Of a DNA stretch of 64,000 nucleotides, positions 5,183 through 63,599 are shown one piece after another (the first letter of the stretch is position 1; each line of letters opens with the position of its first letter). Where the stretch lies: sequence record NC_070966.1; one strand, given 5' to 3'. The notes under the pieces were generated by a model. It was given only the letters and a program-made list of their open reading frames with translations. It had not been told where the DNA came from and ran no database searches. Made by a program: the position numbers and the translations under genes.

Positions 5183-5491
5183 ATGAGCAAATATCGTACA
5201 GTACATACTCTCAAGACGCTTGCACCATTCTACTATGCTGTAATGAATGGTGAGAAGACATTTGAGATTCGTAAGAATGACCGACAGTTTCAGAAGGGTG
5301 ATCTTCTAGTCCTTGATCTTTATGAACCAGACAATCAAACAAAGAATACTATGATTAGACCAGTATCCGTTTATTGTGAAGTAACATGGGTACTTGCTGG
5401 AGGTCAGTTTGGTATCGAGCTAGGATATGCAGGATTGGCTATTCGTATTCTTAACTCACAGGAATTTAATGAATTAAGAGGTCCTTTCTGA
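5183..5491 (+). CDS. ASCH/DUF3850-like protein
   Basis: LKTLAPFYYAVMNGEKTFEIRKNDRQFQKGDLLVL signature. Confidence 0.8.
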   Translation: MSKYRTVHTLKTLAPFYYAVMNGEKTFEIRKNDRQFQKGDLLVLDLYEPDNQTKNTMIRPVSVYCEVTWVLAGGQFGIELGYAGLAIRILNSQEFNELRGPF

Positions 5492-5498
5492 GATTATT

Positions 5499-5527
5499 CA
5501 GCGAAATTCGGCTCTGAGAGCCTTCCT
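5499..5527 (+). promoter_or_regulatory. Bipartite motif CAGCGAA-N13-AGCCTTCCT, copy A
   Basis: CAGCGAA attcggctctgag AGCCTTCCT, intergenic, about 30 nt before the HD gene ATG; identical blocks and spacing at 17106-17134 and 63730-63758. Confidence 0.7.
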
Positions 5528-5559
5528 TTCTACGACCCCTTAGATGAGATCGACACTTT

Positions 5560-6231
5560 ATGAAAGACATTGTCTTTAATCCTCTCCTTAAGATCTCTAG
5601 TGTGAACCGGTACTCCGGAGTTTATCTGACCAAGAATGAGTCAGTTTCAGATCACACTACTCAAACTGGATTACTATGTATTCTAGTCGGCAACGAGATC
5701 AATAAACGTCTTGCGAAATTGAAATCCTCTGTTAGAGTGAATCTCGAGAAATTAGCCTACAAGGCTTTAATCCACGATCTCGAGGAATCCAAGACTTGTG
5801 ACACTCCTAGAAATGTTAAATACTTCAATGACTTGATTTATCAAGAATTTGAGAGAATGGGTGACCAGGTTGTTCTTGAACTATCTGAACTCTATGAATT
5901 TCCTGAGCTCTATGAGCAATGGAAAAATGCTAAGGATAAGACTCTAGAAGGGTATATTCTTAAGATCTGCGATATGATTCATGTCGTACGTAAACTAGTT
6001 GATGAAGTTGTACTTCTTGGAAATCTTAACATGCTTCAGGTAGCACTGGAGTTGAAGGATCATCTGAAGAAGACTCACGATTATATTAATAAGATTACAG
6101 ATCTACCTGCTGAAGCGATTGACGTCTTTAATGAATTGACGATTTTCTCATTGGATACCGTTAACTATATTCTTAAGAAACATCAATCGGAGATTACAGA
6201 TTATAACTTTACATCTCTGAAGAGCGCATAA
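5560..6231 (+). CDS. HD-domain 5'-deoxynucleotidase / dNTPase (YfbR/DatZ-like)
   Basis: RY...ESVSDH, LIHDLEE...D.P..VKY, ICD metal ligands. Confidence 0.8.
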   Translation: MKDIVFNPLLKISSVNRYSGVYLTKNESVSDHTTQTGLLCILVGNEINKRLAKLKSSVRVNLEKLAYKALIHDLEESKTCDTPRNVKYFNDLIYQEFERMGDQVVLELSELYEFPELYEQWKNAKDKTLEGYILKICDMIHVVRKLVDEVVLLGNLNMLQVALELKDHLKKTHDYINKITDLPAEAIDVFNELTIFSLDTVNYILKKHQSEITDYNFTSLKSA

Positions 6232-9200
6232 TGTCCTTAGAAATTGAATCCATTATTAACAAAGTTGATCTGACTAGTGATGTTCGTGTATGTCACATGT
6301 GCCCACTAGCTGAGAAGTTTGGTGGATGTGATAATCTTGGACGAGTATCTTTTGAGATTGTAGGTCAGAATCCTAAGGTTCTACTTGTAGGTGAAGCACC
6401 TGCAGCTGAGGATCTGAAATCTGAACGACCATTCAGTAGTCAGTCTGGTTCATTCTTGAGAATGGCGATGGCTGAAATTGGCATTAATGATTACGCTCTA
6501 GCGAATGTGATCATGTGTCAACCTAAGAGTGTAAATATCTACACTCCGACTCCTGAAGAGTCCGCTCACTGTAAAGCACATATTCAAAGATTTGTTGAAA
6601 AGTACAAACCTGAGACAGTCATCTTGCTCGGACGAGGAGCATATGAAGTCATTCTACCAGAGAGTTACTTCGCAGGTCAGTCAGTTACGAATGTAACCAA
6701 GAAGAAGGCTATCGAAATTGATGGTGTACGTTATGGAGCAGCATTTCATCCATCGTATATCTTCCGTAATGGTGGTAAAGAATCACCACAGTACATCGAC
6801 TTCTTGAATCGATTGAGACGACTGACTCAGAATAGTGTTGATGCAGAATTCATCGTACCGTTTAAGATCGTTAATCTCGATCAACTAGATGAGACTCTCG
6901 AAGAGTTTGATGTCTACAAAGAACTAGGCTTCGACTATGAAGGTACCTCGCTTGATCCGTATGACGTCAATTATCAGGTTCTCGGACTTGGTATGTCATC
7001 GATGGACAAGGCAGTTTATATCGACTTTCATCGAGAGCCTACTCAAGAAGAAAAGAATAAGATATCTGACTTCATTCGTAAGAAGCAGATGTGGGTTTAT
7101 AACGTCAACTATGAAACCAAAGTTACATGGTCTAAGTTGAGTAATGATCTTATTCGATTCCACGATGCGATGACTCTTGTAAAGATCGACTGTTCTCCTG
7201 GATCACTGAAGGACAATGCTCGTAAATATCTGAATGCAGAAATCTGGGAAGAGATCGTAGGTAACTTGACTACCTTGTTCTACGATATCTTCCAATTTAT
7301 GAAGAAGATTGAGGAGAAATCTCCTAAACTATATAATGCTTGTAGACAAGCTAATATGGAGGCGATCTATCTTCTTAAGGAAGATACTGCTGAGAAAATC
7401 ACTGGTGGTAAGAAGAATCCTAAGGTTACGAGATATCGTACCAAGCAGGCAGATCATGCAGACTACATATCTGCTAAGATCTCTGCACTTAGAGAATTCT
7501 GCTCTGATGAAGATATCCAACGTGGATTTACTAAGTTTCCTTACGAGTGGGCAGCTGTTCCTCCGAAGATTCTAGGTGAATACTGCTGCTACGACTCTTA
7601 TTACACACTAGGTCTTAAGAATCATCTGTGGGATAAGTATAAGAGCGTTTACCAGTATTATATCACCCAAGGGTGGCTAGGCTCTACGATGGAGAGCTAT
7701 GGTCTGAATTGGGATGATGATAAAGCTTCTGAGCATGAACGATTCTATCTCGTTGAAGCTACGACATGCTTGAATCAGATCATTCAGAAATTGGATTTTG
7801 GTGAGAAAACTCTTGATATTCATACAAGAGCAAGCATGATTTTCAATGACTCTAGTCTTCCTGATGCTAGGAAACTCATTGATCTGAAAGGTATCTTTAA
7901 TCCAGGTACTCCAGATAAACTTAAACAGAAACCCTTCTGGGATAAGTACGTAACTGACTTTACGACTGCAATATCCATCTATCTTGTTCTCAGTGAACAG
8001 ATTCTAATGTCTCCAATCATTCCTGACCAAGCGATTGAGTTAGTCGATCGTCAAGATCTCAATAAAGCTATTGAGAATTTGATGTCAGTAGATTGGACTA
8101 AGTACGATGGAGTTGATCTTAAGACTGCCAAGTCAATTCAGAAATTGATGATGGATCTTATTGGTACACTCGATGAGAAGATCGGATGGAAGCTATATGC
8201 ATTCAGAAGTGATGTTCTAGAGTGGCAATATAAAGCTCACGAAACGTACGGTGGACTAGATATCGACAATCGTGAGACTTGGACTCCTGAGTTCGAGTTG
8301 TTATATCTTCTGAGAAGATATAAAAAGGTTGAGAAGAGTAAGAATACGTACATCAATGGTAAGGTAGGTAGAGCACGAGTATGGTTGTCGACAGTCGATG
8401 ATTACCAGAAGCCTCCTGTTCGACTGAAGCGTTACTTTGATGTTATGGAAGAGAGACAGTGGAAGAAGTATGAACTTCAGCATAACGAGAGATGGATTCT
8501 TGATACAGAATTCAATGTTGCTGGTGCAAATACTAAACGATGGAAAGCAGCTATTCATACTGTTCCATGGGGATCAGAACTCCGAGAGATCTATGCATCT
8601 CGTTGGTGGGATGGTCTGTTTATGCATTACGACTACTCTCAGGCAGAAGTTCGAATTCTAGCAGCTATCTCTCAGGATAGAGCACTACTGGAAGCATTCG
8701 CTGATCCTGATACTGACATTCACATGTTCGTTGCATCTCGAATCTGGAAGAAAGATCCTAAGGATGTGACTCCAGCTGAGCGTCGATATGCTAAGGTCTG
8801 CTCGTTCTCGATTTTGTACGGTAAGTCTATCGAAGGATTTGCTACTGAACATACCAAGGGTGATGTTGCAGCAGCTAAGCGTATCTTTGATGACTTCTAT
8901 GCAGCATTCCCTCAAGTTAAGGAGTGGATTGAGAAACAGCATAGAGATGCGAAAGTATCTGGTAAGGTCTTTACCTTATTCGGAGATCCTCTGTATCTTG
9001 ATATGTCGGACCCTAATGGTGCTATGCGTGATGCTCAAAACTGGCCAATTCAGTCCTCGAGCAGCTGTGTAGCAGGATGGGCTATCTGGATGAACTACGA
9101 GTTTTCTAGAAATAGAAACATTCCGATTCTTCCAATGGTCTTTACTCACGACTCTCACGATATGGAATTCAGATGTCAACATCTATTCGAGACGATTGAT

Positions 9201-9560
9201 ACTGTTCTCGAAACTGCAGTTGATCTACCTAAGCGTAGATTTAATCTTCCGATGAAGATCGACTGGGAAATCGGTGTTAATCAGTCTGATGCAATTGAGT
9301 TCAAAGAAACATCTCGATTTGATGAAGGTCGAGGTCGTACGTATCACTTTGAATGCAATGAAAATGCAATGATGCCTGTATTCGATCGTCTAAAGAACTA
9401 CTTTGACATCGAATATGAAGTCACTTCTAGAGAGACTGAGAGAGCATCGCTGAAAGAAATGTTCGTTGCAAGACGAGCATTCTCTAAGTATCTTGGTACA
9501 GATGTAACCGTCGTAGGTGGTAACCTCAAACTAGTGAAGAAAAATGGGATAAAAATATGA
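6231..9560 (+). CDS. polA: Family A DNA polymerase with N-terminal family-4 uracil-DNA glycosylase-like domain and 3'-5' exonuclease
   Basis: UDG4: CHMC, VGEAP, ANVIMC, FHPS. Exo: FDYE, YNVNYE, YCCYD. Pol: DYSQAEVRILA, RRYAKVCSFSILYG, NWPIQS, THDS. Confidence 0.92.
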   Translation: MSLEIESIINKVDLTSDVRVCHMCPLAEKFGGCDNLGRVSFEIVGQNPKVLLVGEAPAAEDLKSERPFSSQSGSFLRMAMAEIGINDYALANVIMCQPKSVNIYTPTPEESAHCKAHIQRFVEKYKPETVILLGRGAYEVILPESYFAGQSVTNVTKKKAIEIDGVRYGAAFHPSYIFRNGGKESPQYIDFLNRLRRLTQNSVDAEFIVPFKIVNLDQLDETLEEFDVYKELGFDYEGTSLDPYDVNYQVLGLGMSSMDKAVYIDFHREPTQEEKNKISDFIRKKQMWVYNVNYETKVTWSKLSNDLIRFHDAMTLVKIDCSPGSLKDNARKYLNAEIWEEIVGNLTTLFYDIFQFMKKIEEKSPKLYNACRQANMEAIYLLKEDTAEKITGGKKNPKVTRYRTKQADHADYISAKISALREFCSDEDIQRGFTKFPYEWAAVPPKILGEYCCYDSYYTLGLKNHLWDKYKSVYQYYITQGWLGSTMESYGLNWDDDKASEHERFYLVEATTCLNQIIQKLDFGEKTLDIHTRASMIFNDSSLPDARKLIDLKGIFNPGTPDKLKQKPFWDKYVTDFTTAISIYLVLSEQILMSPIIPDQAIELVDRQDLNKAIENLMSVDWTKYDGVDLKTAKSIQKLMMDLIGTLDEKIGWKLYAFRSDVLEWQYKAHETYGGLDIDNRETWTPEFELLYLLRRYKKVEKSKNTYINGKVGRARVWLSTVDDYQKPPVRLKRYFDVMEERQWKKYELQHNERWILDTEFNVAGANTKRWKAAIHTVPWGSELREIYASRWWDGLFMHYDYSQAEVRILAAISQDRALLEAFADPDTDIHMFVASRIWKKDPKDVTPAERRYAKVCSFSILYGKSIEGFATEHTKGDVAAAKRIFDDFYAAFPQVKEWIEKQHRDAKVSGKVFTLFGDPLYLDMSDPNGAMRDAQNWPIQSSSSCVAGWAIWMNYEFSRNRNIPILPMVFTHDSHDMEFRCQHLFETIDTVLETAVDLPKRRFNLPMKIDWEIGVNQSDAIEFKETSRFDEGRGRTYHFECNENAMMPVFDRLKNYFDIEYEVTSRETERASLKEMFVARRAFSKYLGTDVTVVGGNLKLVKKNGIKI

Positions 9561-10288
9561 GTCGAGCAAAATCACTGATCGACATGATTAAAGGAACCAA
9601 GAACGAGTCTGGTGACGATGACGACGAAATCTCAAATCGTCGTCGTGGTGGTACTTGGATTGATCCTCATCATGTTGACGCAGCATCCAAGAATCTGAAG
9701 CGTACTCAGTCATTCTACAAGAAGGCTAGTAATGCTAGCTCAGTTGAAGATCAAGAGTATTGGTTAGCTCGAGTCTTTAACAAGAATGCTGTTGCTAAGA
9801 GAATCTCCTCTGGATTCTATAACAAGGAAGCTAAGGCAGGAGTCGTAGGCGTCGATGACGTTGAAGATCTGTCAGCATCTCTTGTTACAGGTAATCCAAG
9901 AGCATCGGGTCGTGTTACGACTAAGGATCACACACGTAATCCTGAAGAGATCTTTGCTGCTAACCAGATCGTTAAAGCTCTCTACGATACGATTGACAAG
10001 AAGTGGCCTGGACGTCCTCAGAACAAGATGGTTCTGACATACTTCCTCAAGGTCAATAAAGCTGATCATCTTATTAACTTTAAGCTTCCATACGATGATC
10101 GTGTGGAAGAAATCATCTCTTCTATTGAGAAATATGCTAAAGACAATAACTCCAAGATTACTTGGACTACTCCTAAGCAGTTTCAGAATTTTTCAGGTAT
10201 TGAAGACAGAATGTATGCAAAGGTCATGCAGTTCCTAGCAGATAATGCTGTAGAATTGGGTGCTCTTATCATTCGAGGTAAGAAATAA
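9557..10288 (+). CDS. Putative sigma-like transcription factor carrying the MSRA leader; paralogue of 10731..11387
   Basis: Shares EYW..VF.KN..K.I.S.F..K and VL(T/S)YF blocks with 10731..11387; NPEEIF...LYDTI...KMVL resembles a sigma region 3-4 linker. Confidence 0.4.
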   Translation: MSRAKSLIDMIKGTKNESGDDDDEISNRRRGGTWIDPHHVDAASKNLKRTQSFYKKASNASSVEDQEYWLARVFNKNAVAKRISSGFYNKEAKAGVVGVDDVEDLSASLVTGNPRASGRVTTKDHTRNPEEIFAANQIVKALYDTIDKKWPGRPQNKMVLTYFLKVNKADHLINFKLPYDDRVEEIISSIEKYAKDNNSKITWTTPKQFQNFSGIEDRMYAKVMQFLADNAVELGALIIRGKK

Positions 10289-10635
10289 TGGACCAGAGAG
10301 TACTTGACGTTCTAGCTCAAGGATATATTAATCGTGAGCTTACACTACCAGCCGCTGATCTATCTAAGGCTGTTATTTATATTGTTAATTATCATGTTAG
10401 ACATAAGACAAGTGGACTGGCAGATCTAAAGACTGCTTATGGTAGTCCTGAGTCTTCTAATCTGGCAGTTAGGTTCTACTCTACAGGTCTATTTAATGGT
10501 GTTGTAGATAATGATTCTAAGAGCTCAGATCTATTCTGGTCTCTATTCAATTCGATGACTACATCTCTGATGATTGAGTCCATCAATGAATCGTTAGCTG
10601 AATCCTCGAAAGAAGTTGAAGTGATCGCCGAATAA
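10288..10635 (+). CDS. Hypothetical protein
   Basis: ORF coupled to the upstream stop (TAATG), in operon. Confidence 0.7.
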   Translation: MDQRVLDVLAQGYINRELTLPAADLSKAVIYIVNYHVRHKTSGLADLKTAYGSPESSNLAVRFYSTGLFNGVVDNDSKSSDLFWSLFNSMTTSLMIESINESLAESSKEVEVIAE

Positions 10636-10673
10636 AGGCGCTTACTTGTTGGGTAAATGGGTGCAGTTAGGCT

Positions 10674-10707
10674 CTTGGAGGGATTCTTATTCGGTGAGCC
10701 CTCCAAG
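10674..10707 (+). promoter_or_regulatory. GC-rich hairpin upstream of the second sigma-like gene
   Basis: CTTGGAGGG...CCCTCCAAG 9-bp stem, no U-tract. Confidence 0.5.
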
Positions 10708-10730
10708 GCTTCCAGAAAGAGGGTAATGTA

Positions 10731-11387
10731 ATGGCTAGCGATAGACAGATGAAAGGTTACATCTGGGGAGAGCAAATCCTGGATCATGCTCACATTGAGC
10801 ATTATGCAAGGGCGATGAGATCCGATGATGTACGTACCGAGGAGTACTGGTACCAGGCAGTATTTCATGGGAAGAACCACTCTAAGGTTCTTCAGTCGGA
10901 AGTCTTTCATAAGAAAATCCGCAACAACGTTACAAATAAAGTAGAAGTTGAGACTCTGGTTTCTACTTCTAACTCTGACGTCGTTAATGATGTTCTAGCA
11001 GAGGAGAGAAAGAATGAAGTAAAATATTCTCGAGTTATCGAGGATGATAAGGTCGGTAATATGTCCGACTATCTTCCCGATGCAACTGTTGGGTTCTCAG
11101 TTATTATCAGAGAAATAGCTGACAAATGCAACGATGATGAAATCAAGGTCCTGAGCTACTTTGTATGTCAGGAACATCTGGATAATATCCTATTCGAGGG
11201 GAATTCGATTCATTCATCAAACGATCGCTTCAATCGTACGATCCTAGGTATCTGGGAAAAGAATGTGAAGAGCATCAATGATCTGAATCGATTTGTAGGT
11301 ACTCGTGCTCGTGCTGATAAAGCTAGGTGGAGACTCTGCAATCTCTTGAAGAAGGAGTATCCTGAACTCTTGTCAGGAAAACGATGA
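10731..11387 (+). CDS. Putative sigma-like transcription factor; paralogue of 9557..10288
   Basis: Shared blocks with 9557..10288; C-terminal SINDLNRFVGTRARADKARWRLCNLLK is HTH-like; lies just upstream of rpoC. Confidence 0.4.
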   Translation: MASDRQMKGYIWGEQILDHAHIEHYARAMRSDDVRTEEYWYQAVFHGKNHSKVLQSEVFHKKIRNNVTNKVEVETLVSTSNSDVVNDVLAEERKNEVKYSRVIEDDKVGNMSDYLPDATVGFSVIIREIADKCNDDEIKVLSYFVCQEHLDNILFEGNSIHSSNDRFNRTILGIWEKNVKSINDLNRFVGTRARADKARWRLCNLLKKEYPELLSGKR

Positions 11388-11623
11388 GTCCATCTAACAA
11401 GCCCTATGACCCAAAGTTAGACACAATCATCTACGAAAATAGACATCCTGAAACGGGTTTGTGCATCTCGGTGCATAAATACGGAAGCAGTGAACCGAAG
11501 ATCAAGTTAGGTCCAAGAATCGTCGGTGACGACTCCAAACCTGTCTACTTGAAATTAGGTAGAATATCTATAAACGAGTTTTTGTGGATATCCGAGGTCC
11601 TAAAACCCTACGTTAAATCTTAG
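11384..11623 (+). CDS. Small protein, possible PC4-like ssDNA-binding fold
   Basis: PYDPKLD...ISVHKYGSSEPKIKL...KLGRIS beta-strand pattern recalled from PC4-like small proteins. Confidence 0.35.
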   Translation: MSPSNKPYDPKLDTIIYENRHPETGLCISVHKYGSSEPKIKLGPRIVGDDSKPVYLKLGRISINEFLWISEVLKPYVKS

Positions 11624-11635
11624 AGGATCTAAAAC

Positions 11636-14600
11636 ATGCAACTTTCTCTGAAGCCAGTCTCTCCAGAATCTGTACTCTTGACTTCACAAGGAGAGGTCAA
11701 GTCGTATGAGACTCTGAACTTCAAGACAGGTCTACCTGTTCGAGACGGTCTCTTGTGCCAGAAGGTATTCGGACCGATTAGAGACTACGTATGTGAATGC
11801 GGCAAGTACGATGGTAAGAAATACCAGGGACATACTTGTGAGAAGTGCGGTGTTACGGTAGCGAGTTCACGTGCTCGTACTGTGAGAATGGGTCATATTG
11901 ATCTTCAAGTTCCCATTCTTAATCCGTTGATGATCGAGTCGATCGAATCGATTATAGGTCTCCCATCCAGAAAGATGGAGGACTTTATGAAGAACAAGAT
12001 CTGCCTGAAATTTTCAGCATCTGGTACAGGTAATCTTGTTCGTAAGGACGGTACACGAGGTATCGCGTATTTTGTAGATCCTAAGGAATCTGATCCTCGA
12101 TCTCCTACTCTGCAGCATACGAAGTCGTCTCTGGTTCTTTATGAACTCTTGACGGATCTCGATATTGAAGAGACGCTCAAAGTCAATGGATCCAAGATCC
12201 TGAAGACCTATGTGCAGAAGAACTTCCCTCTTTCTAATCTCTTCATTCGTTATCTACCGGTATCTCCAGCAGGATACCGTCCAGTCACTCGTATGAGAAA
12301 CTACTATTCTCAGCATCCCAAGAATGACCTTTATCAGAAGATCATTCGACGTACTCTGCGAGTGAAGGAACTGGTTAATATCAATGCAGACTCAATGATT
12401 CTTCAGGAAGAGGCAGGCATTCTGTATAAGTCTGTCGATCAACTCTTCACTGGAGGAGCTCGAGATGGCGATGGGAACCCTCTTCCTGGAACCATTGAGA
12501 AGATGATGGGTAAGAGAGGTATTCTCCGAGGAAATCTTCTCGGTAAGCGTACCGACTACTCTGGACGTTCAGTTATCACTTCAGCAGGTGATCGTGTAGA
12601 AGTGGACCAGATTGGTCTACCTCGTAAGATGGCATACATCTTGTTTCGTCCTTTCATTCTCCGTTATCTGATGACGGAGTATCTGGATCATTATACTGAA
12701 GCACTGAAGCACTACGAGAAGAAGACTGTTATCGCACTGAAGTCTCTCGAGATGGTAGCTAAGGATTATCCGATCATCATGAATCGTGCTCCTACGCTTC
12801 ATAGATACGGTGTAATGTCTTTCCGTACCAAGTTGGTAAATGGTAAGGCTATCCTCGTTCATCCGATTGTATGTTCTCCATTCAATGCAGACTTCGACGG
12901 AGATACTGTAGCTATCCACTTGCCTCTTTCAGCTAAGTCTGTTCAGGAGTGCAAAGATTATCTCATGCCTCAGAACAATCTCCTGTCTTCACTTGATGGT
13001 GATCCGATCATCAATATGTCGCACGAGATGGTTATCGGTCTTGCTATCATGTCTCGTATTAAGGATCATGATAAGGGATTCGGTACATTCCGACGTATGG
13101 ATGAGCTCGAGTATCTTCATACTGTCACCAATCCTCAGACTAGCCGTCCTACACTTGAGATCTACGATAGAATCAAGTGGAAAGATGAACGAGGAGTGAC
13201 AGAGACGTGCTATGGTCGACTTCTTCTCGAGCAGACATTCAAGACCAAGAATCTTCCGAAGGACTTCTCTAAGAAGACTATTCGTCGGATGATCAGTGAT
13301 GCGTACGACAAGCTTGGACCTGATGAACTGATTAAGGTACTGGATGTAGCTACTCAGCTTTCATTCAAGTATGCTACGAACTCTGGTTTCTCAGTTTCGA
13401 TTGATGATTGTAAGGTACCTTCTACGAAACCTGCTAAGATTGCGAAAGCTAGAGAGCAGGAAGCTGAGAATTATCGTCAATTCGATAACAATGAAATCAA
13501 TCTTGCAGAGCGTCGAGAGAACAATATTCGTCTCTGGAACGATGTCTTTGAAGATCTTCATCACGATTGGATGAAAGAAGCAGGTGAGGACAATCCGGTA
13601 GTTCTTATGTATACTACTGGTGCTCGTGTTAGTAAGTCTCAGGTCAATCAGATCGGAGTCGCTAAGGGTCTTGTATCCAATGCACTCAATCAGATCATCG
13701 AGAAGCCTATGGTTAACTCCTTCCGTGAAGGATTGTCGACGTTTGAGTACTTTGCATCTTGCTCTGGATCTCGTAAGTCCATGGCAGACAAGAAGAATCT
13801 GACTCCCAAGTCTGGTTATCTTACACGTCGAATGATTACTGCTAGCCGAGATTTCTTCATTAATTCAGATGATTGTGGTACCGATAAGGGTATCATGCGT
13901 ACGATGAAGTCCTCGTATGGACGTTATCGTTGCGACAATGGTGAGATGATTGGTACGAACAATAGTGAAGAACTCGTTAAGGTTCGTAGTCCGATTCATT
14001 GTGAGTCGCATGGTGGTATCTGCGTTAAGTGCTACGGTATTGATCCTGCTAAGCGTAAGATCGTCACGAAGGGGTCCAACGTAGGAGCTATTGCAGCTCA
14101 CTCGTTGACTGAATCTACAACTCAGATGACGATGCGTACCTTCCATACATCTGGTGCAGTCGTTCTGAAGGATAGTCCGATGGTCATTACTGCCCAGAAG
14201 GATGGTAAGATCAGCTGGGATACTCTTCATCCTGTCTACAGCAAGATTCATGTTGTTGCAGATATGGAAGATTGGGATACACCTCTCAATGATCGATTGA
14301 CGTATACAGTTCATAACAAGATGTCTCGCATTCTTGTTAAGGATGGTCAGTCTGTCAAGAAGGGTGATCCTCTAGCGATCTACGTTGATGAAGATCTTGA
14401 GAGCGACGACGTCAGTGGATCGCTCCCTAAGATTGAATCTCTGTATGAAGGTCGAGTACCTCCGAAAGCGTACAAGTCAGTTATCTCGAAGGTAGCTGGT
14501 AAGATTGGTATTAACATCGGAGATGAAGGTCTTAAGATCTTCGTTGATGGTGAATACCAAGGTACTGCTCATCCTAAGACTCCGGTATTCGTTGCTCAAG

Positions 14601-15019
14601 GTCAGTATGTTGAAGCTGGTCAGACTCTCTCGTTTGGTTCTCCAGACGTAGTAGGTTTGTTCAAGGAGACAAAGGATCTTGATCTCGCTTACAAGGTCTT
14701 TGAGAAGACTCTGATGGATATCTACAATAAGGAAGGTCTCCAGCCAGTACCAACTCATTCGGAGATGATCTTCAGAGCGATGTCTAATCTGGTATACACC
14801 GAGAGTGGTCCTTATGGTCTTCGATCCCATGGAGACAAGGGTAGCATTATGCTGAAGGGTATTACTCAGATTGGTGCGAATCATCCGTCCTGGTTGAAGT
14901 CAATCGGATTCGGATGGGTAGCTCAGACGATCAGAACTTCTGCTGTGAATCTTGCTACCACGTACGATCTTCCTACCGAACGTCTGATGTCTGGTGAATT
15001 GATTTACGAGGATAAATAA
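11636..15019 (+). CDS. rpoC: DNA-directed RNA polymerase beta-prime subunit, unsplit
   Basis: CECGKY..CEKC zinc site, LLGKRTDYSGRSVI, NRAPTLHR, FNADFDGD catalytic motif, bridge helix SGYLTRR, second Zn site, trigger loop QMTMRTFH. Confidence 0.97.
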   Translation: MQLSLKPVSPESVLLTSQGEVKSYETLNFKTGLPVRDGLLCQKVFGPIRDYVCECGKYDGKKYQGHTCEKCGVTVASSRARTVRMGHIDLQVPILNPLMIESIESIIGLPSRKMEDFMKNKICLKFSASGTGNLVRKDGTRGIAYFVDPKESDPRSPTLQHTKSSLVLYELLTDLDIEETLKVNGSKILKTYVQKNFPLSNLFIRYLPVSPAGYRPVTRMRNYYSQHPKNDLYQKIIRRTLRVKELVNINADSMILQEEAGILYKSVDQLFTGGARDGDGNPLPGTIEKMMGKRGILRGNLLGKRTDYSGRSVITSAGDRVEVDQIGLPRKMAYILFRPFILRYLMTEYLDHYTEALKHYEKKTVIALKSLEMVAKDYPIIMNRAPTLHRYGVMSFRTKLVNGKAILVHPIVCSPFNADFDGDTVAIHLPLSAKSVQECKDYLMPQNNLLSSLDGDPIINMSHEMVIGLAIMSRIKDHDKGFGTFRRMDELEYLHTVTNPQTSRPTLEIYDRIKWKDERGVTETCYGRLLLEQTFKTKNLPKDFSKKTIRRMISDAYDKLGPDELIKVLDVATQLSFKYATNSGFSVSIDDCKVPSTKPAKIAKAREQEAENYRQFDNNEINLAERRENNIRLWNDVFEDLHHDWMKEAGEDNPVVLMYTTGARVSKSQVNQIGVAKGLVSNALNQIIEKPMVNSFREGLSTFEYFASCSGSRKSMADKKNLTPKSGYLTRRMITASRDFFINSDDCGTDKGIMRTMKSSYGRYRCDNGEMIGTNNSEELVKVRSPIHCESHGGICVKCYGIDPAKRKIVTKGSNVGAIAAHSLTESTTQMTMRTFHTSGAVVLKDSPMVITAQKDGKISWDTLHPVYSKIHVVADMEDWDTPLNDRLTYTVHNKMSRILVKDGQSVKKGDPLAIYVDEDLESDDVSGSLPKIESLYEGRVPPKAYKSVISKVAGKIGINIGDEGLKIFVDGEYQGTAHPKTPVFVAQGQYVEAGQTLSFGSPDVVGLFKETKDLDLAYKVFEKTLMDIYNKEGLQPVPTHSEMIFRAMSNLVYTESGPYGLRSHGDKGSIMLKGITQIGANHPSWLKSIGFGWVAQTIRTSAVNLATTYDLPTERLMSGELIYEDK

Positions 15020-15022
15020 AGG

Positions 15023-15220
15023 ATGCAAGACCTATCTCAACTATGTGAAGTTGAGATGGAGAAGTTAGTTGAAATACTAATGAGATCGACTCACTTGACA
15101 CTCGACGGTGTTGAGCTGAGTCGATCTCATGAATATCATAATAGCCCATCTGTCTCTACAATTAAAACTCATAAAGTCCTTGATGACTCATACATTACAG
15201 TTAGACTGAAATATGTATAA
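15023..15220 (+). CDS. Hypothetical protein
   Basis: Short ORF 3 nt after the rpoC stop. Confidence 0.5.
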   Translation: MQDLSQLCEVEMEKLVEILMRSTHLTLDGVELSRSHEYHNSPSVSTIKTHKVLDDSYITVRLKYV

Positions 15221-15926
15221 CTTGCAATACGATGATGGAATTCTTAAATCAAATAGGGAGTCTCTCGTAAACATACGAGCTCCATTCTTCAAACGGATTG
15301 ATCGACGATCTCGCAAGTCGTCCATCGAGAGATTAATGATCTCACCTGATACAACAAGAAATTGTAGTCAGATTAAGAGATTTCTCGTTCCGTTCAACGA
15401 TAAGTACTTGTACAGCATGCATGTGACTTATCGTGACGACTTAAAGTGTCAATCTATTTATGACACTAACAAGTCTCTCAAGCGAATCCTCCGATCTAAA
15501 ATGTTAATGTCAGCTGTGAACAGGATAAATGAGTATCCTCAACTCAAAGCAGACATATTGTCTGTAATCAAGCTTGTAGTTAATTCTTGGGAGTTTGATG
15601 GTCTTATCACAGACATTGAATGGCTCCAGGATGAAAATCTACTGGATACTGTGATATCTAAGTGGAAACTGAAGAAGTACGAATCCTCTACAGAGCGAGG
15701 GTCAGTGATCAATCTCTTAATAAAGAGTTTTGATGGAGTTCCACTTAATCTTCTATCTCATCTAGAGATGAAGAAAATCAGTATTGAGGATACTGACATT
15801 GAGGACGTTAAGTTTAAATGTCCTCTGATATTAATGCGATCGAATTCATCTTGTGCAGGATTCATATCTAAGTCCTTGGATAAAGGACTACCTGTGAGTC
15901 TGTTCAAGATTGATATAAAAGAGTAA
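15213..15926 (+). CDS. Hypothetical protein
   Basis: 237-aa ORF, last gene of the + strand arm. Confidence 0.7.
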   Translation: MYNLQYDDGILKSNRESLVNIRAPFFKRIDRRSRKSSIERLMISPDTTRNCSQIKRFLVPFNDKYLYSMHVTYRDDLKCQSIYDTNKSLKRILRSKMLMSAVNRINEYPQLKADILSVIKLVVNSWEFDGLITDIEWLQDENLLDTVISKWKLKKYESSTERGSVINLLIKSFDGVPLNLLSHLEMKKISIEDTDIEDVKFKCPLILMRSNSSCAGFISKSLDKGLPVSLFKIDIKE

Positions 15927-15982
15927 AAATAAAGGCCACTAGGCGGACCCTTCTCGGAGGATTCACCTAGTGGCCTATTTTT
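15926..15982. terminator. Bidirectional intrinsic terminator between the convergent arms
   Basis: AAAAATAAAGGCCACTAGG...CCTAGTGGCCTATTTTT: 11-bp stem with A-tract and T-tract flanks. Confidence 0.85.
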
Positions 15983-15987
15983 GTGTC

Positions 15988-16242
15988 TTATGGAAGAAGT
16001 GGTACGAAACTCTTCAGCTTATTGTACACATCATCCTGCTTACCCATTTCAGTCGAATACTTATCAAGAATCGTCTGATTATCTGGGAATTCATTACCTT
16101 GATTAGCTACCCAGTCGACATAATCATGCCAATCCTGGTCATCGTGAAGATCACGATGCTGCTTAATCAGATTTGCATATTCAGCATCTGTGAATTCATG
16201 CAATGATGAAAGCTTCTCAAGAATGTCTTTAGCTCTACTCAT
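15988..16242 (-). CDS. Small protein with MSRA leader, probable internal head protein
   Basis: GGAG then ATG at 16242: MSRAKDILEKLSSLHE. Confidence 0.65.
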   Translation of the reverse strand: MSRAKDILEKLSSLHEFTDAEYANLIKQHRDLHDDQDWHDYVDWVANQGNEFPDNQTILDKYSTEMGKQDDVYNKLKSFVPLLP

Positions 16243-16253
16243 ATTAATCTCCG

Positions 16254-16709
16254 TCAAGCTACTACAGCGAGTTCATTACTTGGTACTTCATGAACGTCAC
16301 CATCGACTTCGATCATGCAGATTTCACCGTTCACTTTAAGAACAGTGCCTGTACCGTGAACTGATTCAACAGTGTTATTAAGAAGGATCTCACGACCATT
16401 CTTATCTTCGCATTCGATGAATGCTCTCTGACCATTGTCAGGAGTGTAATCAGGAGCTTTACCTGTTACGCCATCTGCATTCACATTGTTCCAGTGACCG
16501 TATGCGTCAAAGTATAGTACGTCGAGATCCGAACTATCTTGGAACTTGTCACGTTCAGCCATAGCATCCTTGAAAGGCATTGCTAGAGGACCTAGGATAA
16601 CTTTATTGTTGGTACGATTAACAATGTACGTACCAATGCGTTTACTGGTATCTTCGTCGATACCTGTGATCTTTGACAGATCACTAATCAGACCTGATGC
16701 TCTGCTCAT
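16254..16709 (-). CDS. Protein with MSRA leader, probable internal head protein
   Basis: AAGGA RBS; MSRASGLISDLSKITGIDE; SH3-like C-terminal strands. Confidence 0.65.
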   Translation of the reverse strand: MSRASGLISDLSKITGIDEDTSKRIGTYIVNRTNNKVILGPLAMPFKDAMAERDKFQDSSDLDVLYFDAYGHWNNVNADGVTGKAPDYTPDNGQRAFIECEDKNGREILLNNTVESVHGTGTVLKVNGEICMIEVDGDVHEVPSNELAVVA

Positions 16710-16737: not shown

Positions 16738-17037
16738 TTAGAGACCAGCAGCCTTGCGCTTTCTCATAGTCATTTGACGCTTACGAGAGATAGCAGCTTG
16801 CTGTCCTCTCTTCTTACGAGCACCCATCTTCGCAGCCTTACGCTTAGCGATGATCTCACCGGCACTCATCTTGACGCAAGTCTTACCATCAATCTTGTAA
16901 CCTGGAGGGCAATCAAGAATAACACTCTTGGCTCCACCTCTGAATGTTACTTTCTTCTTAGGAGCAGCTTCACTAGCTGGAATAGAAGACTCATAGTAAG
17001 CATCAATTTTAGTGATCAAATCTGCAGATTTAGACAT
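16738..17037 (-). CDS. Prohead core protein, T4 gp68-like
   Basis: MSKSADLITKI leader; basic C-terminus AAISRKRQMTMRKRKAAGL resembles the gp68 end (RKRKKALKRRKALGL). Confidence 0.6.
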   Translation of the reverse strand: MSKSADLITKIDAYYESSIPASEAAPKKKVTFRGGAKSVILDCPPGYKIDGKTCVKMSAGEIIAKRKAAKMGARKKRGQQAAISRKRQMTMRKRKAAGL

Positions 17038-17105
17038 AATGTACATCCATTTTAGTTTATTTAATGAGGATTATCACTTTACACAATTATAAAGTGTGCA
17101 CAAAG

Positions 17106-17134
17106 AGGAAGGCTTATGTCGCCTTCCTTCGCTG
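17106..17134 (-). promoter_or_regulatory. Bipartite motif copy C, superimposed on a terminator-like hairpin
   Basis: Minus strand CAGCGAA ggaaggcgacata AGCCTTCCT; GGAAGGC/GCCTTCC stem followed by TCTTT. Confidence 0.7.
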
Positions 17135-17149
17135 AATCCTTAGCTTTAT

Positions 17150-20303: not shown

Positions 20304-20328
20304 AATGCTATCCTTAATGAGATATAAA

Positions 20329-20360
20329 TGTTAGTAGGTGAAATTTTCCACCTACTAACA
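20329..20360 (-). terminator. Intrinsic terminator
   Basis: TGTTAGTAGGTG...CACCTACTAACA 12-bp stem followed by TTTATAT on the minus strand. Confidence 0.75.
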
Positions 20361-20374
20361 GATTTGAGAGTCTA

Positions 20375-54366: not shown

Positions 54367-54684
54367 TCAGTCATCCTCGTCGTCTGAATCAACTTCTTCA
54401 GTGTAGGATACGCCAGCATCATCGAGCTTAGACTTCAGAGTTTCATAGAAGCTCTGAGCATCTTCAACACTCATCTTGACAACGCAGTCATAGATTCCAA
54501 GTTCTCCTGTATCGTCAACAGAAGCTAGCTGATCAGCTACCCAGTCTTCAATCTCTTCAGGAGCATCTTCCATTGAATCAACAATATTCTCGCATGCGAT
54601 AGCGATCGCATCCAGTGTATCTTCATCATCTTCAACGATGGCATTAGGATACACCTTGTTAAGTAGTTCACTAGAACGCGACAT
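54367..54684 (-). CDS. Acidic protein with MSRS leader, probable internal head / core protein
   Basis: GGAG then ATG at 54684: MSRSSELLNKVYPNAIVE; very Asp/Glu-rich. Confidence 0.6.
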   Translation of the reverse strand: MSRSSELLNKVYPNAIVEDDEDTLDAIAIACENIVDSMEDAPEEIEDWVADQLASVDDTGELGIYDCVVKMSVEDAQSFYETLKSKLDDAGVSYTEEVDSDDEDD

Positions 54685-55549: not shown

Positions 55550-55610
55550 AATAAATCCTCTATTTTATATTCAGAATGAGTAGCAATCTACTTATTATAA
55601 ATATAAAGAA

Positions 55611-55636
55611 TGAGGTGGATCTTTCGACCCACCTCA
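55611..55636 (-). terminator. Terminator after the major capsid gene
   Basis: TGAGGTGGGTC GAAA GATCCACCTCA then TTCTTT. Confidence 0.85.
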
Positions 55637-55642
55637 CTAAAA

Positions 55643-57075: not shown

Positions 57076-58587
57076 TTACTTAGAGAATGATTCCATGAGA
57101 CGGCTGGTCAGACTTCCACCACGTGTGCGGAGCTCAGATTCCTGATGATCTTCATTTAGAGATTCATTCTGGACTGGCTTCTTAGTCTTATTAGTTGCAT
57201 CGTAACGATCAGCAACTGCATCACCCTTGATTGATTCAAGGAGAGACTTAGTTTCTGAAACACCATGCTTCTTGACCATTGCCTCAACTGCTTCGGACTT
57301 AACTCCGAATTCGGTAGCGATAGATTCAACATCCTTACGGAATGCTTCATCCTTAGACTTAGAAACGATAGACTCAGTCATATCGAAAGCCTTAGAGATG
57401 TCTTCTGGCGTACCTAATGCAGCATAGCTCTCTAGGGTAGCCTTCAGATTCTTAATTTCTTCAGGATTACCTAGTGCCTCGTATTTACCGAGGGATTCAA
57501 GCTTACTACCTAGCTCTTCAAGATTGCCAAGTTCAGAATAGTTACTGACAACATCTAGCATCCCACTGAGTTCGTCAGGAGATCCAAGATCCTTGTAATC
57601 TTCTACCAGAGTGTCGATACGGTTGAAAGCCTCAGTGAGCTCTTCTGGAGTACCAAACTCTTTATACTGAACAAGCATAGCTTCTGCTTCATCTAGAGCC
57701 TTAGCAACCTGTTCAGCTGTACCTAGATCCTTGTATCCAGATACGGTTGTCTGGAGATCAGCGACCTGACCTTCGAGAACAGTAACCTTGCGATTACTAT
57801 TAGCGACGGACTCTTCAAGTCTACCGATTTCCTTGTCCTTGAGTGCAATCGACTGACTAAGTGCATCAGCTTCATTCGTCTTAGACTTAACTGTGTTCAG
57901 AGCCTCATCAAGTGCTAGCTGGAGCTTAGCCTTGTCCTTTGAGAGAGACTCTAGTAATTCTGTGCTCATGTTATTCTCCGAAATATTATCATCGGTATCG
58001 ATGTTGTCTTGGTTTTCACTTTCGACTAGTACAGGAATAGCCGTCGGTACTCCTGGTCTCTGCACAAAGTCGAATCCTTCTAACTTAAACGTATCAGGAT
58101 CTACGACCTTGGAACCACTCTTGGTTGTTCCCTTGTACTCACCAGTTGCTCTTGAAGATACTTTAAGTCGAACTCCACCACGTAGTAGTGCATTTAGATT
58201 GCGACCAGCGTCAGTATTTAGGACCTGGATTTCTCCCATCCCAACACCTGTATCTTCGTCAATCCAAAGCTTAGTGACTTTGTGACTTGCTTTACCTTCA
58301 AGTAATGATTGATCATCGAGAGGTTGCTCGTGACCAATTGTACCTAATACTTCACCGTAGGACATTCTTTCGGCACTCTCGAAGATCGCTTTCTCCCAGA
58401 GCTTGTCTGAATAGAATCGACCGTTGAGAGACTCACCGTTAACTGTAAAGAATGGTCCTGCGACTCTCGCTAGGATATTGACACCGTCAACAACACGATC
58501 TTCTTCCGACTCAGTCATAACCGTCCAAGGCTTCATATGCTTAGGATCGATATTGAATGAGTCAACGATCAGTTTCTTTTCAGACAT
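57076..58587 (-). CDS. Prohead protease fused to a scaffold-like coiled-coil / repeat domain
   Basis: GPF..NGRFYS..LGTIGH..SHKV..VSSRATG..GFDFV..P (gp21-like); six Y..LG.PEE repeats. Confidence 0.88.
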   Translation of the reverse strand: MSEKKLIVDSFNIDPKHMKPWTVMTESEEDRVVDGVNILARVAGPFFTVNGESLNGRFYSDKLWEKAIFESAERMSYGEVLGTIGHEQPLDDQSLLEGKASHKVTKLWIDEDTGVGMGEIQVLNTDAGRNLNALLRGGVRLKVSSRATGEYKGTTKSGSKVVDPDTFKLEGFDFVQRPGVPTAIPVLVESENQDNIDTDDNISENNMSTELLESLSKDKAKLQLALDEALNTVKSKTNEADALSQSIALKDKEIGRLEESVANSNRKVTVLEGQVADLQTTVSGYKDLGTAEQVAKALDEAEAMLVQYKEFGTPEELTEAFNRIDTLVEDYKDLGSPDELSGMLDVVSNYSELGNLEELGSKLESLGKYEALGNPEEIKNLKATLESYAALGTPEDISKAFDMTESIVSKSKDEAFRKDVESIATEFGVKSEAVEAMVKKHGVSETKSLLESIKGDAVADRYDATNKTKKPVQNESLNEDHQESELRTRGGSLTSRLMESFSK

Positions 58588-63266: not shown

Positions 63267-63291
63267 CAGGTTCTCCTTAATTGAATAAAGT

Positions 63292-63317
63292 TGGTGTCCC
63301 GATTTCTCAGGACACCA
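63292..63317 (-). promoter_or_regulatory. GAAA-tetraloop hairpin in the leader of the terminase operon
   Basis: UGGUGUCCUGA GAAA UCGGGACACCA: 11 bp including a U-G pair that forms only on the minus strand. Confidence 0.7.
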
Positions 63318-63376
63318 TAGTATTATTACATTATATAAATGCCCTTATAAACTGGGCGCTACTGAAAATTGATAAA

Positions 63377-63599
63377 GGGAGGAGATCAAATAACTTTGAC
63401 GAGGATAGTTACGATCTCCTCCCATGCTACTCAGAAAGAGGAGTAGCCACTCAGGCGACAAGACAGACTAGAGAGCTCCAGCACAAACTCAATCTAGCGA
63501 AACGTCTCGTCAGCCAACTACCAAGGAGAGGTTCCCAGTAAGAAGCGCTTCTCATGTATTATGAAAGCTAGTTCTTCCAGAAGGGTTACCTTAAAGAAC
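63377..63599 (-). ncRNA. Candidate structured RNA of five consecutive helices
   Basis: Stems at 63571-63599, 63547-63568, 63454-63515, 63426-63447 and 63377-63423; G-U pairs favour the minus strand; U-rich tail after the last stem. Confidence 0.5.

Follow-up and report, generated by a model that had tools for sequence, protein, structure and literature searches.

Two paralogous proteins encoded beside a lone RNA polymerase beta-prime gene in a Rhizobium phage are candidate accessory transcription factors

A stretch of 64,000 nucleotides from record NC_070966.1 (hereafter the window) was analysed with respect to two open reading frames (ORFs), A and B, which lie just upstream of a gene for an RNA polymerase beta-prime subunit. 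The window belongs to a genome of the Rhizobium phage RHph_TM30 type, a T4-superfamily jumbo phage (207.6 kb; Kleczkowskaviridae, genus Cuauhnahuacvirus), and its position 9557 corresponds to position 153180 of the record. A and B are true, ancient paralogues and form a rare, phage-specific and entirely unannotated family. Judged by their sequences, membership of A and B in the sigma-70 family is not supported, and a sigma-like role of both is plausible from the genomic context and the architecture of the proteins. The most interesting fact is that the phage brings a beta-prime subunit without a beta subunit. The central genes are the following.

9557..10288, plus strand: ORF A, 243 amino acids (aa), RefSeq gp338, annotated as a hypothetical protein; the leader-bearing paralogue; AlphaFold2 (AF2) model with a predicted local distance difference test (pLDDT) value of 71
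10288..10635, plus strand: ORF X, 115 aa; kept between A and B in related contigs
10731..11387, plus strand: ORF B, 218 aa, gp336; the leaderless paralogue with a basic C-terminal end (GTRARADKARWR)
11636..15019, plus strand: RNA polymerase beta-prime homologue, full-length, 1127 aa

An earlier note on this DNA had aligned the EYW.. and ..VL(T/S)YF.. segments of the two proteins and had regarded A and B as a duplicated pair beside beta-prime. The alignments turned out to be real and far above chance level, and the pair is confirmed by paralogy and by kept synteny. The direct comparison of A and B by BLASTP resulted in 28.5 bits with 27% identity across 55 aa (pairwise E 6e-5). When the A family (14 sequences) was aligned by hhalign with B and one homologue, the probability was 93.7% with an E value of 1.9e-7, KMVLTYFL being paired with IKVLSYFV. 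With an 11-sequence alignment of B, the corresponding values were 97.7% and 2e-12. The latter match extends over 173 columns and places A49-231 on B20-215, so that both domains and the C-terminal ends are included. The B proteins of other loci were found by the hidden Markov model (HMM) of the A family with E values from 1e-7 to 2e-3. The BLASTP, hhalign and HMM matches therefore identify A and B as true, old paralogues. In a Foldseek search of BFVD, the model of A retrieved a protein from the same accession series (E 4e-4, probability 1.0); with 218 aa it has the length of B and is presumably B.

The relatives of both proteins are few. A and B share 99.6-100% identity with hypothetical proteins in ten RHph_TM30-type Rhizobium phage records, and a tblastn search of 50,697 phage records gave nothing beyond these ten near-identical phages. 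Only 17 relatives of A were obtained by a HMMER scan of 1.84 billion representative proteins, and nine relatives of B by a profile search. Word-indexed protein searches yielded one partial or close homologue each for A and B and no more, and the scan of IMG/VR and JGI metagenome contigs with the beta-prime or B alignment resulted in no match. No informative family was assigned to A, X, B or the small flanking ORFs in Pfam, PHROGs and NCBIfam scans.

The sigma identity that had been proposed for A and B was not borne out, as no significant link to the sigma-70/extracytoplasmic function (ECF), gp55 or helix-turn-helix (HTH) families was detected by sequence-profile, structure or profile-profile searches. 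Neither Sigma70_r2 nor Sigma70_r4 of Pfam matched A, B or all 14 A-family members, even at E 10, and there was no NCBIfam or PHROGs match of A or B. The PDB sequence-profile search gave nothing below E 0.59 for A and E 0.09 for B. When the AF2 models of A and B were searched for sigma folds by Foldseek against the PDB, no match was below E 2 and two sigma chains appeared at E 6-9, with B only, although whole-chain models are ill-suited to Foldseek when their linkers are flexible. T4 gp55 was aligned by hhalign with A1 and A6 at probabilities of 0.1-0.7%, and its best phmmer hit among all ORFs of the phage had an E value of 1.7. The hhalign probability of A and B with the Carin-5 gene annotated as a sigma factor was below 1%. 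No gp55-like or RpoE-like sigma was detectable in the genome.

The closest approach to a sigma factor was obtained by hhalign against 81 RpoE sequences, where the probability was 1.2% (P 0.043) for A, 0.2% for B and 0.45% (P 0.13) for A and B merged. The segments QSFYKKASNA, EYWLARV and NPEEIF..LYDTID of A were co-linear with RpoE regions 2.1/2.2, 2.3/2.4 and 3.2/4.1, respectively. The score of A was reached by 1 of 100 column shuffles and 3 of 100 block shuffles, and that of B by 51-72 of 100 shuffles. The NPEEIF..LYDTI segment, which the earlier note had called ECF-sigma-like, does exist and was aligned with NPENLM..VFRTIE of sigma-E, but the overall match is at chance level when B is considered. 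The resemblance between A and sigma-E was marginal and was discarded as evidence after the shuffle controls and the merging with B.

The AF2 models of A and B share one plan, in which an N-terminal helical domain that carries the EYW motif is connected to a C-terminal bundle by some 30 linker residues of low confidence. In the model of A, helices at residues 37-94 are followed by a low-confidence part at 95-124 and by helices at 129-241. The model of B has helices at 22-58, a helix at 82-95 between low-confidence parts at 59-79 and 96-116, and helices at 117-214. The C-terminal bundle of both models is well-defined and contains five to six helices with pLDDT values of 82-95. The two domains of A are located as follows.

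9665..9838, plus strand: N-terminal helical domain of A, residues 37-94; holds EYWLARVFN, the best-conserved motif of the family
9941..10279, plus strand: C-terminal helical domain of A, residues 129-241; holds NPEEIF..LYDTID, KMVLTYFL and the HTH-like end FQNFSGIEDRMYAKV

A pair of helical domains with a flexible linker between them, a trait of the sigma-70 family that is not specific to sigma factors, is present in both models. The C-terminal ends of A and B carry a phi-x-x-phi-x-G-(I/T) turn pattern, in which the HTH-like turn lies in the last two helices and reads G-I in A and G-T-R in B; the end of B is strongly basic. These ends had been described as helical and HTH-like. Their helical nature is confirmed by the models, whereas the HTH assignment found no significant family or fold match in the databases, the best being a GntR-type winged HTH (PDB 4ham) with E 0.84 at A residues ~175-224.

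The order of A, X, B and beta-prime is kept in three divergent types of uncultured-phage contigs (L004, L005 and L006/L007), where identity among the A proteins is only about 22-45%. The gene upstream of the cassette varies, being polA in L005 and ribonucleotide reductase in L006/L007. Related genes accompany beta-prime also in named phages. Vibrio phage Va2 has a clear homologue of B, which is separated from the downstream beta-prime by two small ORFs. Escherichia coli phage IME392 encodes a 486-aa A-like protein after polA (E 3.6e-9) and, between the halves of its beta-prime, a weak B-like ORF (L097, 7548-8282; E 5e-4). The beta-prime of IME392 (L097, 4908-9869) is split into two genes, one of which is misannotated as beta, and two ORFs lie between the halves. 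An unannotated gap of ~660 nucleotides (nt) is found just upstream of the first half.

The beta-prime subunit encoded in the window has the NADFDGD motif, the N-terminal Zn-ribbon cysteines, the clamp-helix region and all five Rpb1 domains, and it is apparently catalytically intact. A beta subunit is annotated nowhere in the RHph_TM30-type genome, and none was recognised by Pfam or PHROGs among the large unannotated ORFs. The beta subunits of Carin-5 and YerA41 were searched by tblastn and hmmsearch against every genome ORF of at least 60 aa and gave nothing, the best score being 10 bits. As a positive control, the beta-prime of Carin-5 retrieves that of the window at 1e-77. In the phage collection, beta was found in Carin-5, YerA41, AR9 and others, and it was detected in no TM30-like, Va2, 150E35-1, IME392 or EP_H11 record, all of which carry this beta-prime. 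The possibility that the accessory ORFs represent a fragmented beta was ruled out, A and B being all-helical paralogues and the genome having no beta signal.

The genome thus has a complete beta-prime and no beta, and so the polymerase must borrow host subunits; the transcription programme is not self-contained, contrary to what the earlier note had suggested. A hybrid enzyme of host beta and phage beta-prime would be the simplest reading of this gene content. No description of such a hybrid polymerase in these phages was found in the literature searched. Because beta-prime comes without beta, the leading candidates for factors that would run a chimeric polymerase are A, X and B.

A differs from B in its N-terminus. 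The MSRA leader and the following acidic run are present in A only, as the earlier note had stated, and the leader was found in none of the B orthologues. The features connected with the leader are listed below.

9557..9607, plus strand: leader of A, residues 1-17 (MSRAKSLIDMIKGTKNE); predicted amphipathic helix at 3-15; putative capsid-targeting propeptide ending at Glu17
9608..9628, plus strand: acidic run SGDDDDE after the leader; pLDDT below 50, which suggests that it is disordered in the model
16738..17037, minus strand: head scaffold/core protein homologue with the same type of leader (MSKSADLITKI); phrog_3503, E 3e-12
15988..16709, minus strand: two small leader-bearing ORFs of 84 aa and 151 aa, both starting with MSRA and adjoining the head scaffold homologue
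54367..54684, minus strand: leader-bearing 105-aa ORF (MSRSSELLNKV...IVE), three genes downstream of the major capsid protein
Record positions 75828, 82018, 131177, 135143 and 138478, plus strand: other leader-bearing ORFs
57076..58587, minus strand: prohead protease, 503 aa; T4 gp21-type Peptidase_S77 and a coiled-coil region; presumed enzyme of leader processing

Three ORFs of the window start with MSRA. The broader pattern MS[RK][AS]xx[LIVM][LIVM]xx[LIVM] begins nine ORFs of the genome, and a tenth carries it after an upstream Met. The nine N-terminal matches compare with 0.05 expected from the internal frequency of the pattern, and the enrichment at N-termini is ~170-fold. A [LIVM]xE site ending at residues 9-19 occurs in 7 of the 10 leaders vs 16.5% of the other ORFs (p 2.5e-4), and all ten leaders have a Glu at positions 13-19. 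An equivalent leader is present in the A orthologues of other phages, most of which have the canonical site, and in distant orthologues the amphipathic pattern is kept at the protein level despite different codons. Three of the leader ORFs are in the tRNA cluster, among them that at record position 131177 (85 aa), which is unannotated in RefSeq. The ip genes of T4 also sit in the tRNA region. Taken together, the about ten leader proteins resemble the ejected internal proteins of T4.

The Peptidase_S77 match of the prohead protease amounts to 34.7 bits (cut-off 27) at residues 41-184, and the window also encodes a capsid protein of the gp23 family. The long coiled-coil region of the protease has weak PspA/Csm1-type matches; the protein is possibly a protease-scaffold fusion. 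In T4, the ten N-terminal residues of the capsid-targeting sequence (CTS) are enough for loading into the prohead core, and the protease cuts after a Glu (PMC9026906). The leader of A is likened to this propeptide because leaders of its type occur on the scaffold homologue and its neighbours, mostly end in a prohead-protease motif and are accompanied by a Peptidase_S77 protein and a gp23-type capsid protein; by analogy, its predicted behaviour matches that of a T4 capsid-targeting propeptide. The T4 Alt protein is an ejected cargo that acts on host RNA polymerase, and T4 internal proteins are diverse and evolve fast (PMC9026906). A putative division in which A would be delivered by the virion and B would be made after infection is reasonable on this analogy. 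Which of the copies serves early and which late transcription, as assigned by the earlier note, is not readable from the sequence. No virion proteome of an RHph_TM30-type phage was met in the literature on these phages, no search having been aimed at proteomic data.

Sigma-70-type promoter-like sites are depleted around the cassette, at 5400-16300 of the window, with 13 sites vs 25.9 expected from shuffled sequence (standard deviation 5.5). The T4 late promoter TATAAATA is not enriched (3 sites vs 4.2 expected), and exact k-mer counting gave no obvious shared promoter. The 95-nt gap before B (10636-10730, plus strand) contains a perfect inverted repeat of 9 bp (CTTGGAGGG ... CCCTCCAAG), which is not followed by a T-run. 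This hairpin was considered as a notably stable element and rejected, its folding energy being ordinary (z -0.48). Several late structural genes are preceded by a G+C-rich hairpin and then a short (C/A)TTTATA(T/A) element on the minus strand, which is possibly a late promoter. This combination is absent upstream of B and was found at the following sites.

Intergenic 17038-17149, 20304-20374, 55550-55642 and 63267-63400, minus strand: hairpin with the (C/A)TTTATA(T/A) element

On the plus strand, the genes around the cassette follow the order UDG-fused polA, A, X, B, 79-aa ORF, beta-prime, 65-aa ORF and 237-aa ORF; late structural genes come after the 237-aa ORF on the opposite strand. The remaining members of this row are given below.

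6231-9560, plus strand: UDG-fused family-A DNA polymerase (polA)
11384..11623, plus strand: 79-aa ORF between B and beta-prime; not kept in related contigs
15213..15926, plus strand: 237-aa ORF downstream of beta-prime; homologue of the same-position 250-aa ORF of contig L006

The start codon of A overlaps the stop codon of polA (ATGA). The polymerase gene (6231-9560, plus strand) encodes a UDG-PolA fusion of the YerA41/Carin-5 group. The polymerase of RHph-TM30 was listed as resembling those of phages with thymidine-hypermodified DNA (PMC12686479), and the RHph_TM30-type genome may be hypermodified because its polymerase falls in the UDG-fused PolA group. The G+C content of the genome, ~40%, looks low for a Rhizobium phage. 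The 237-aa ORF matched the 250-aa ORF of L006 over the full length with E 3e-6, and it belongs to the conserved module because the homologue occupies the same position there. In RefSeq, gp332 starts at window position 15336 (196 aa). The true start is probably 15213, as the homology with L006 begins at residue 11 of the longer frame. A start at 15213 would overlap the preceding 65-aa ORF.

According to the proposed explanation, A, B and the small ORF X would be accessory factors of the phage beta-prime, which most likely joins host alpha, beta and omega as a hybrid core. A and B are the best candidates for factors that make the hybrid enzyme, or initially the host enzyme in its unmodified form, specific for phage DNA; they would act as functional analogues of sigma-like factors and not as demonstrable members of the sigma family. 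A would be loaded into the prohead core via its propeptide of ~17 residues, cut by the gp21-type protease behind a Glu and then ejected with the DNA. It would thus be present before any phage gene is expressed, and B would be made de novo. Packaging, RNA polymerase binding, promoter specificity and a temporal division of labour are all properties that we infer for A and B. Taken as a whole, the proposal of two accessory specificity factors for a hybrid polymerase, with A packaged and ejected and B synthesised in the cell, falls a little short of being probable. A farther-reaching form of it appears unlikely: in RHph_TM30-, Va2- and IME392-like phages, a lone phage beta-prime would join host alpha2-beta-omega in a chimeric polymerase, and a paralogous pair from a new family of non-sigma specificity factors would programme this enzyme. 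A would be pre-loaded into the capsid and injected, allowing the incoming, probably thymidine-modified genome to be transcribed ahead of all phage protein synthesis, and B would act later with the phage beta-prime.

Several results weigh against the proposed explanation. The confidence of the AF2 models is only moderate (pLDDT 71 for A and 66 for B), and neither protein was linked to any RNA-polymerase-binding or DNA-binding family in all the tests performed. X may be fused to A in Va2 and P0012, but the matches were weak and below significance (E 0.03-0.2). The leader of A has KNE at positions 15-17 and lacks the canonical [LIVM]xE. Five of the leader-bearing ORFs are outside the structural modules. 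A is translationally coupled to replication genes and not to late structural genes, and its late expression is putative for this reason.

One of the rival explanations concerns the leader of A. It is somewhat unlikely that MS(R/K)A is a shared N-terminal element with another role, for instance in translation initiation context, degradation or localisation, in which case A and B would differ only in regulation. The missing canonical hydrophobic-x-Glu site in A would agree with such a role, as would the location of half of the leader genes in early- or middle-looking plus-strand regions. However, the retention of the amphipathic pattern in distant A orthologues with different codons, the ~170-fold N-terminal enrichment together with the enriched [LIVM]xE sites, and the occurrence of the leader on the head scaffold homologue and two adjoining ORFs of a phage with a T4-type protease argue for a packaging signal. 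In another alternative, A could be no more than one T4-style ejected internal protein among many, such as an anti-restriction factor that protects modified DNA; its adjacency to beta-prime would have no functional meaning, and B would be a non-packaged relative with an unrelated role. The sharing of the leader with about nine other small proteins, several of them in the tRNA region, fits this, and so do the diversity and quick evolution of the T4 internal proteins (PMC9026906) and the probable modification of the phage DNA, the polymerase being in the UDG-fused PolA group. It is nevertheless quite improbable, since at least three divergent types of contig share the order A-X-B-beta-prime despite the changing upstream neighbour, A and B are kept together as a pair, and A-like and B-like genes accompany this beta-prime in Va2 and IME392 too.

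The linkage of the cassette to beta-prime would also be expected if A, X and B were assembly or take-over factors that help the phage beta-prime to displace the host beta-prime or that inhibit host sigma or transcription. A lone beta-prime must enter the host core enzyme, and A and B have no DNA-binding family match. This alternative is considered distinctly unlikely, as both A and B have an HTH-like end, strongly basic in B, the phage has no other recognisable promoter-specificity factor, and the sigma-70-type promoter-like sites are depleted (13 vs 25.9 expected). Finally, A and B could be extremely divergent members of the sigma-70/ECF family, with the N-terminal domain as sigma-2, the linker as region 3.2 and the C-terminal domain as sigma-4 with an insertion. 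The ECF architecture is compatible with the two helical domains and the low-confidence linker, the three motifs of A are co-linear on RpoE (P 0.043, with few shuffles scoring as high), and the genes are directly upstream of beta-prime, like the Carin-5 gene annotated as a sigma factor. In contrast, the hhalign probability of A was only 1.2%, B gave nothing and merging of A and B lowered the signal; there was no Sigma70_r2/r4, NCBIfam, PDB-sequence or Foldseek match, and no similarity to T4 gp55 or the Carin-5 'sigma' was found. A divergent sigma origin is thereby very improbable.

The known routes by which phages take over transcription are a modified host enzyme, as in T4, and a complete own enzyme, as in T7, N4, phiKZ and AR9. 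If A and B serve a polymerase of host beta and phage beta-prime, a third route would be added. A capsid-targeted sigma-like factor, if true, would widen the known cargo of T4-type heads. As the family reaches the E. coli phage IME392, the idea is directly testable with a laboratory strain.

In comparison with known systems, the leader of A is most similar to those of the T4 internal proteins IPI-III and Alt. In both cases a short N-terminal amphipathic propeptide with a Glu-terminated cleavage motif is common to several unrelated small proteins, and the same genome encodes a protease of the gp21 type (Peptidase_S77) as well as a gp23-type capsid protein. The leader of this phage differs in being MS[RK][AS]xx[LIV][LIV]xx[LIV] with a length of about 13-19 residues. 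A is no ADP-ribosyltransferase; it has no homology to T4 internal proteins, and its packaging is putative.

ECF (group IV) sigma factors such as E. coli RpoE have a similar size (~200 aa) and likewise two helical domains with a flexible linker; A has a weak co-linear motif resemblance to them, and its gene adjoins that of an RNA polymerase large subunit. The differences are that no significant profile or fold match was obtained, B has no resemblance, and the C-terminal domain of A, ~113 aa, is roughly double sigma-4. T4 gp55 and gp33 are small T4-superfamily phage proteins that redirect an RNA polymerase with host subunits, as is proposed for A and B. In contrast to T4, with whose gp55 the hhalign probability was below 1%, this phage lacks a gp55 homologue and brings its own beta-prime.

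Proteins phiKZ gp68 and AR9 gp226, the fifth subunits of the non-virion RNA polymerases of jumbo phages, provide promoter specificity without recognisable sigma similarity. A and B are comparable with them as phage-specific proteins in which no sigma sequence similarity is recognisable. The phiKZ and AR9 enzymes differ in having complete split beta and beta-prime sets, whereas only beta-prime is present here; the profiles of A and B match no PDB chain and hence no solved polymerase subunit is detectably related. The gene content is also comparable with that of YerA41 and Carin-5, phages with thymidine-hypermodified DNA, whose polymerases fall in the same UDG-fused PolA group and whose beta-prime is related; they have a gene of ~200 aa directly upstream of beta-prime, annotated as a sigma factor in Carin-5. 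In these phages, a beta gene, absent here, follows beta-prime, and the single upstream gene, which has no detectable homology to A or B, stands in the place of the paralogous pair with X between its members.

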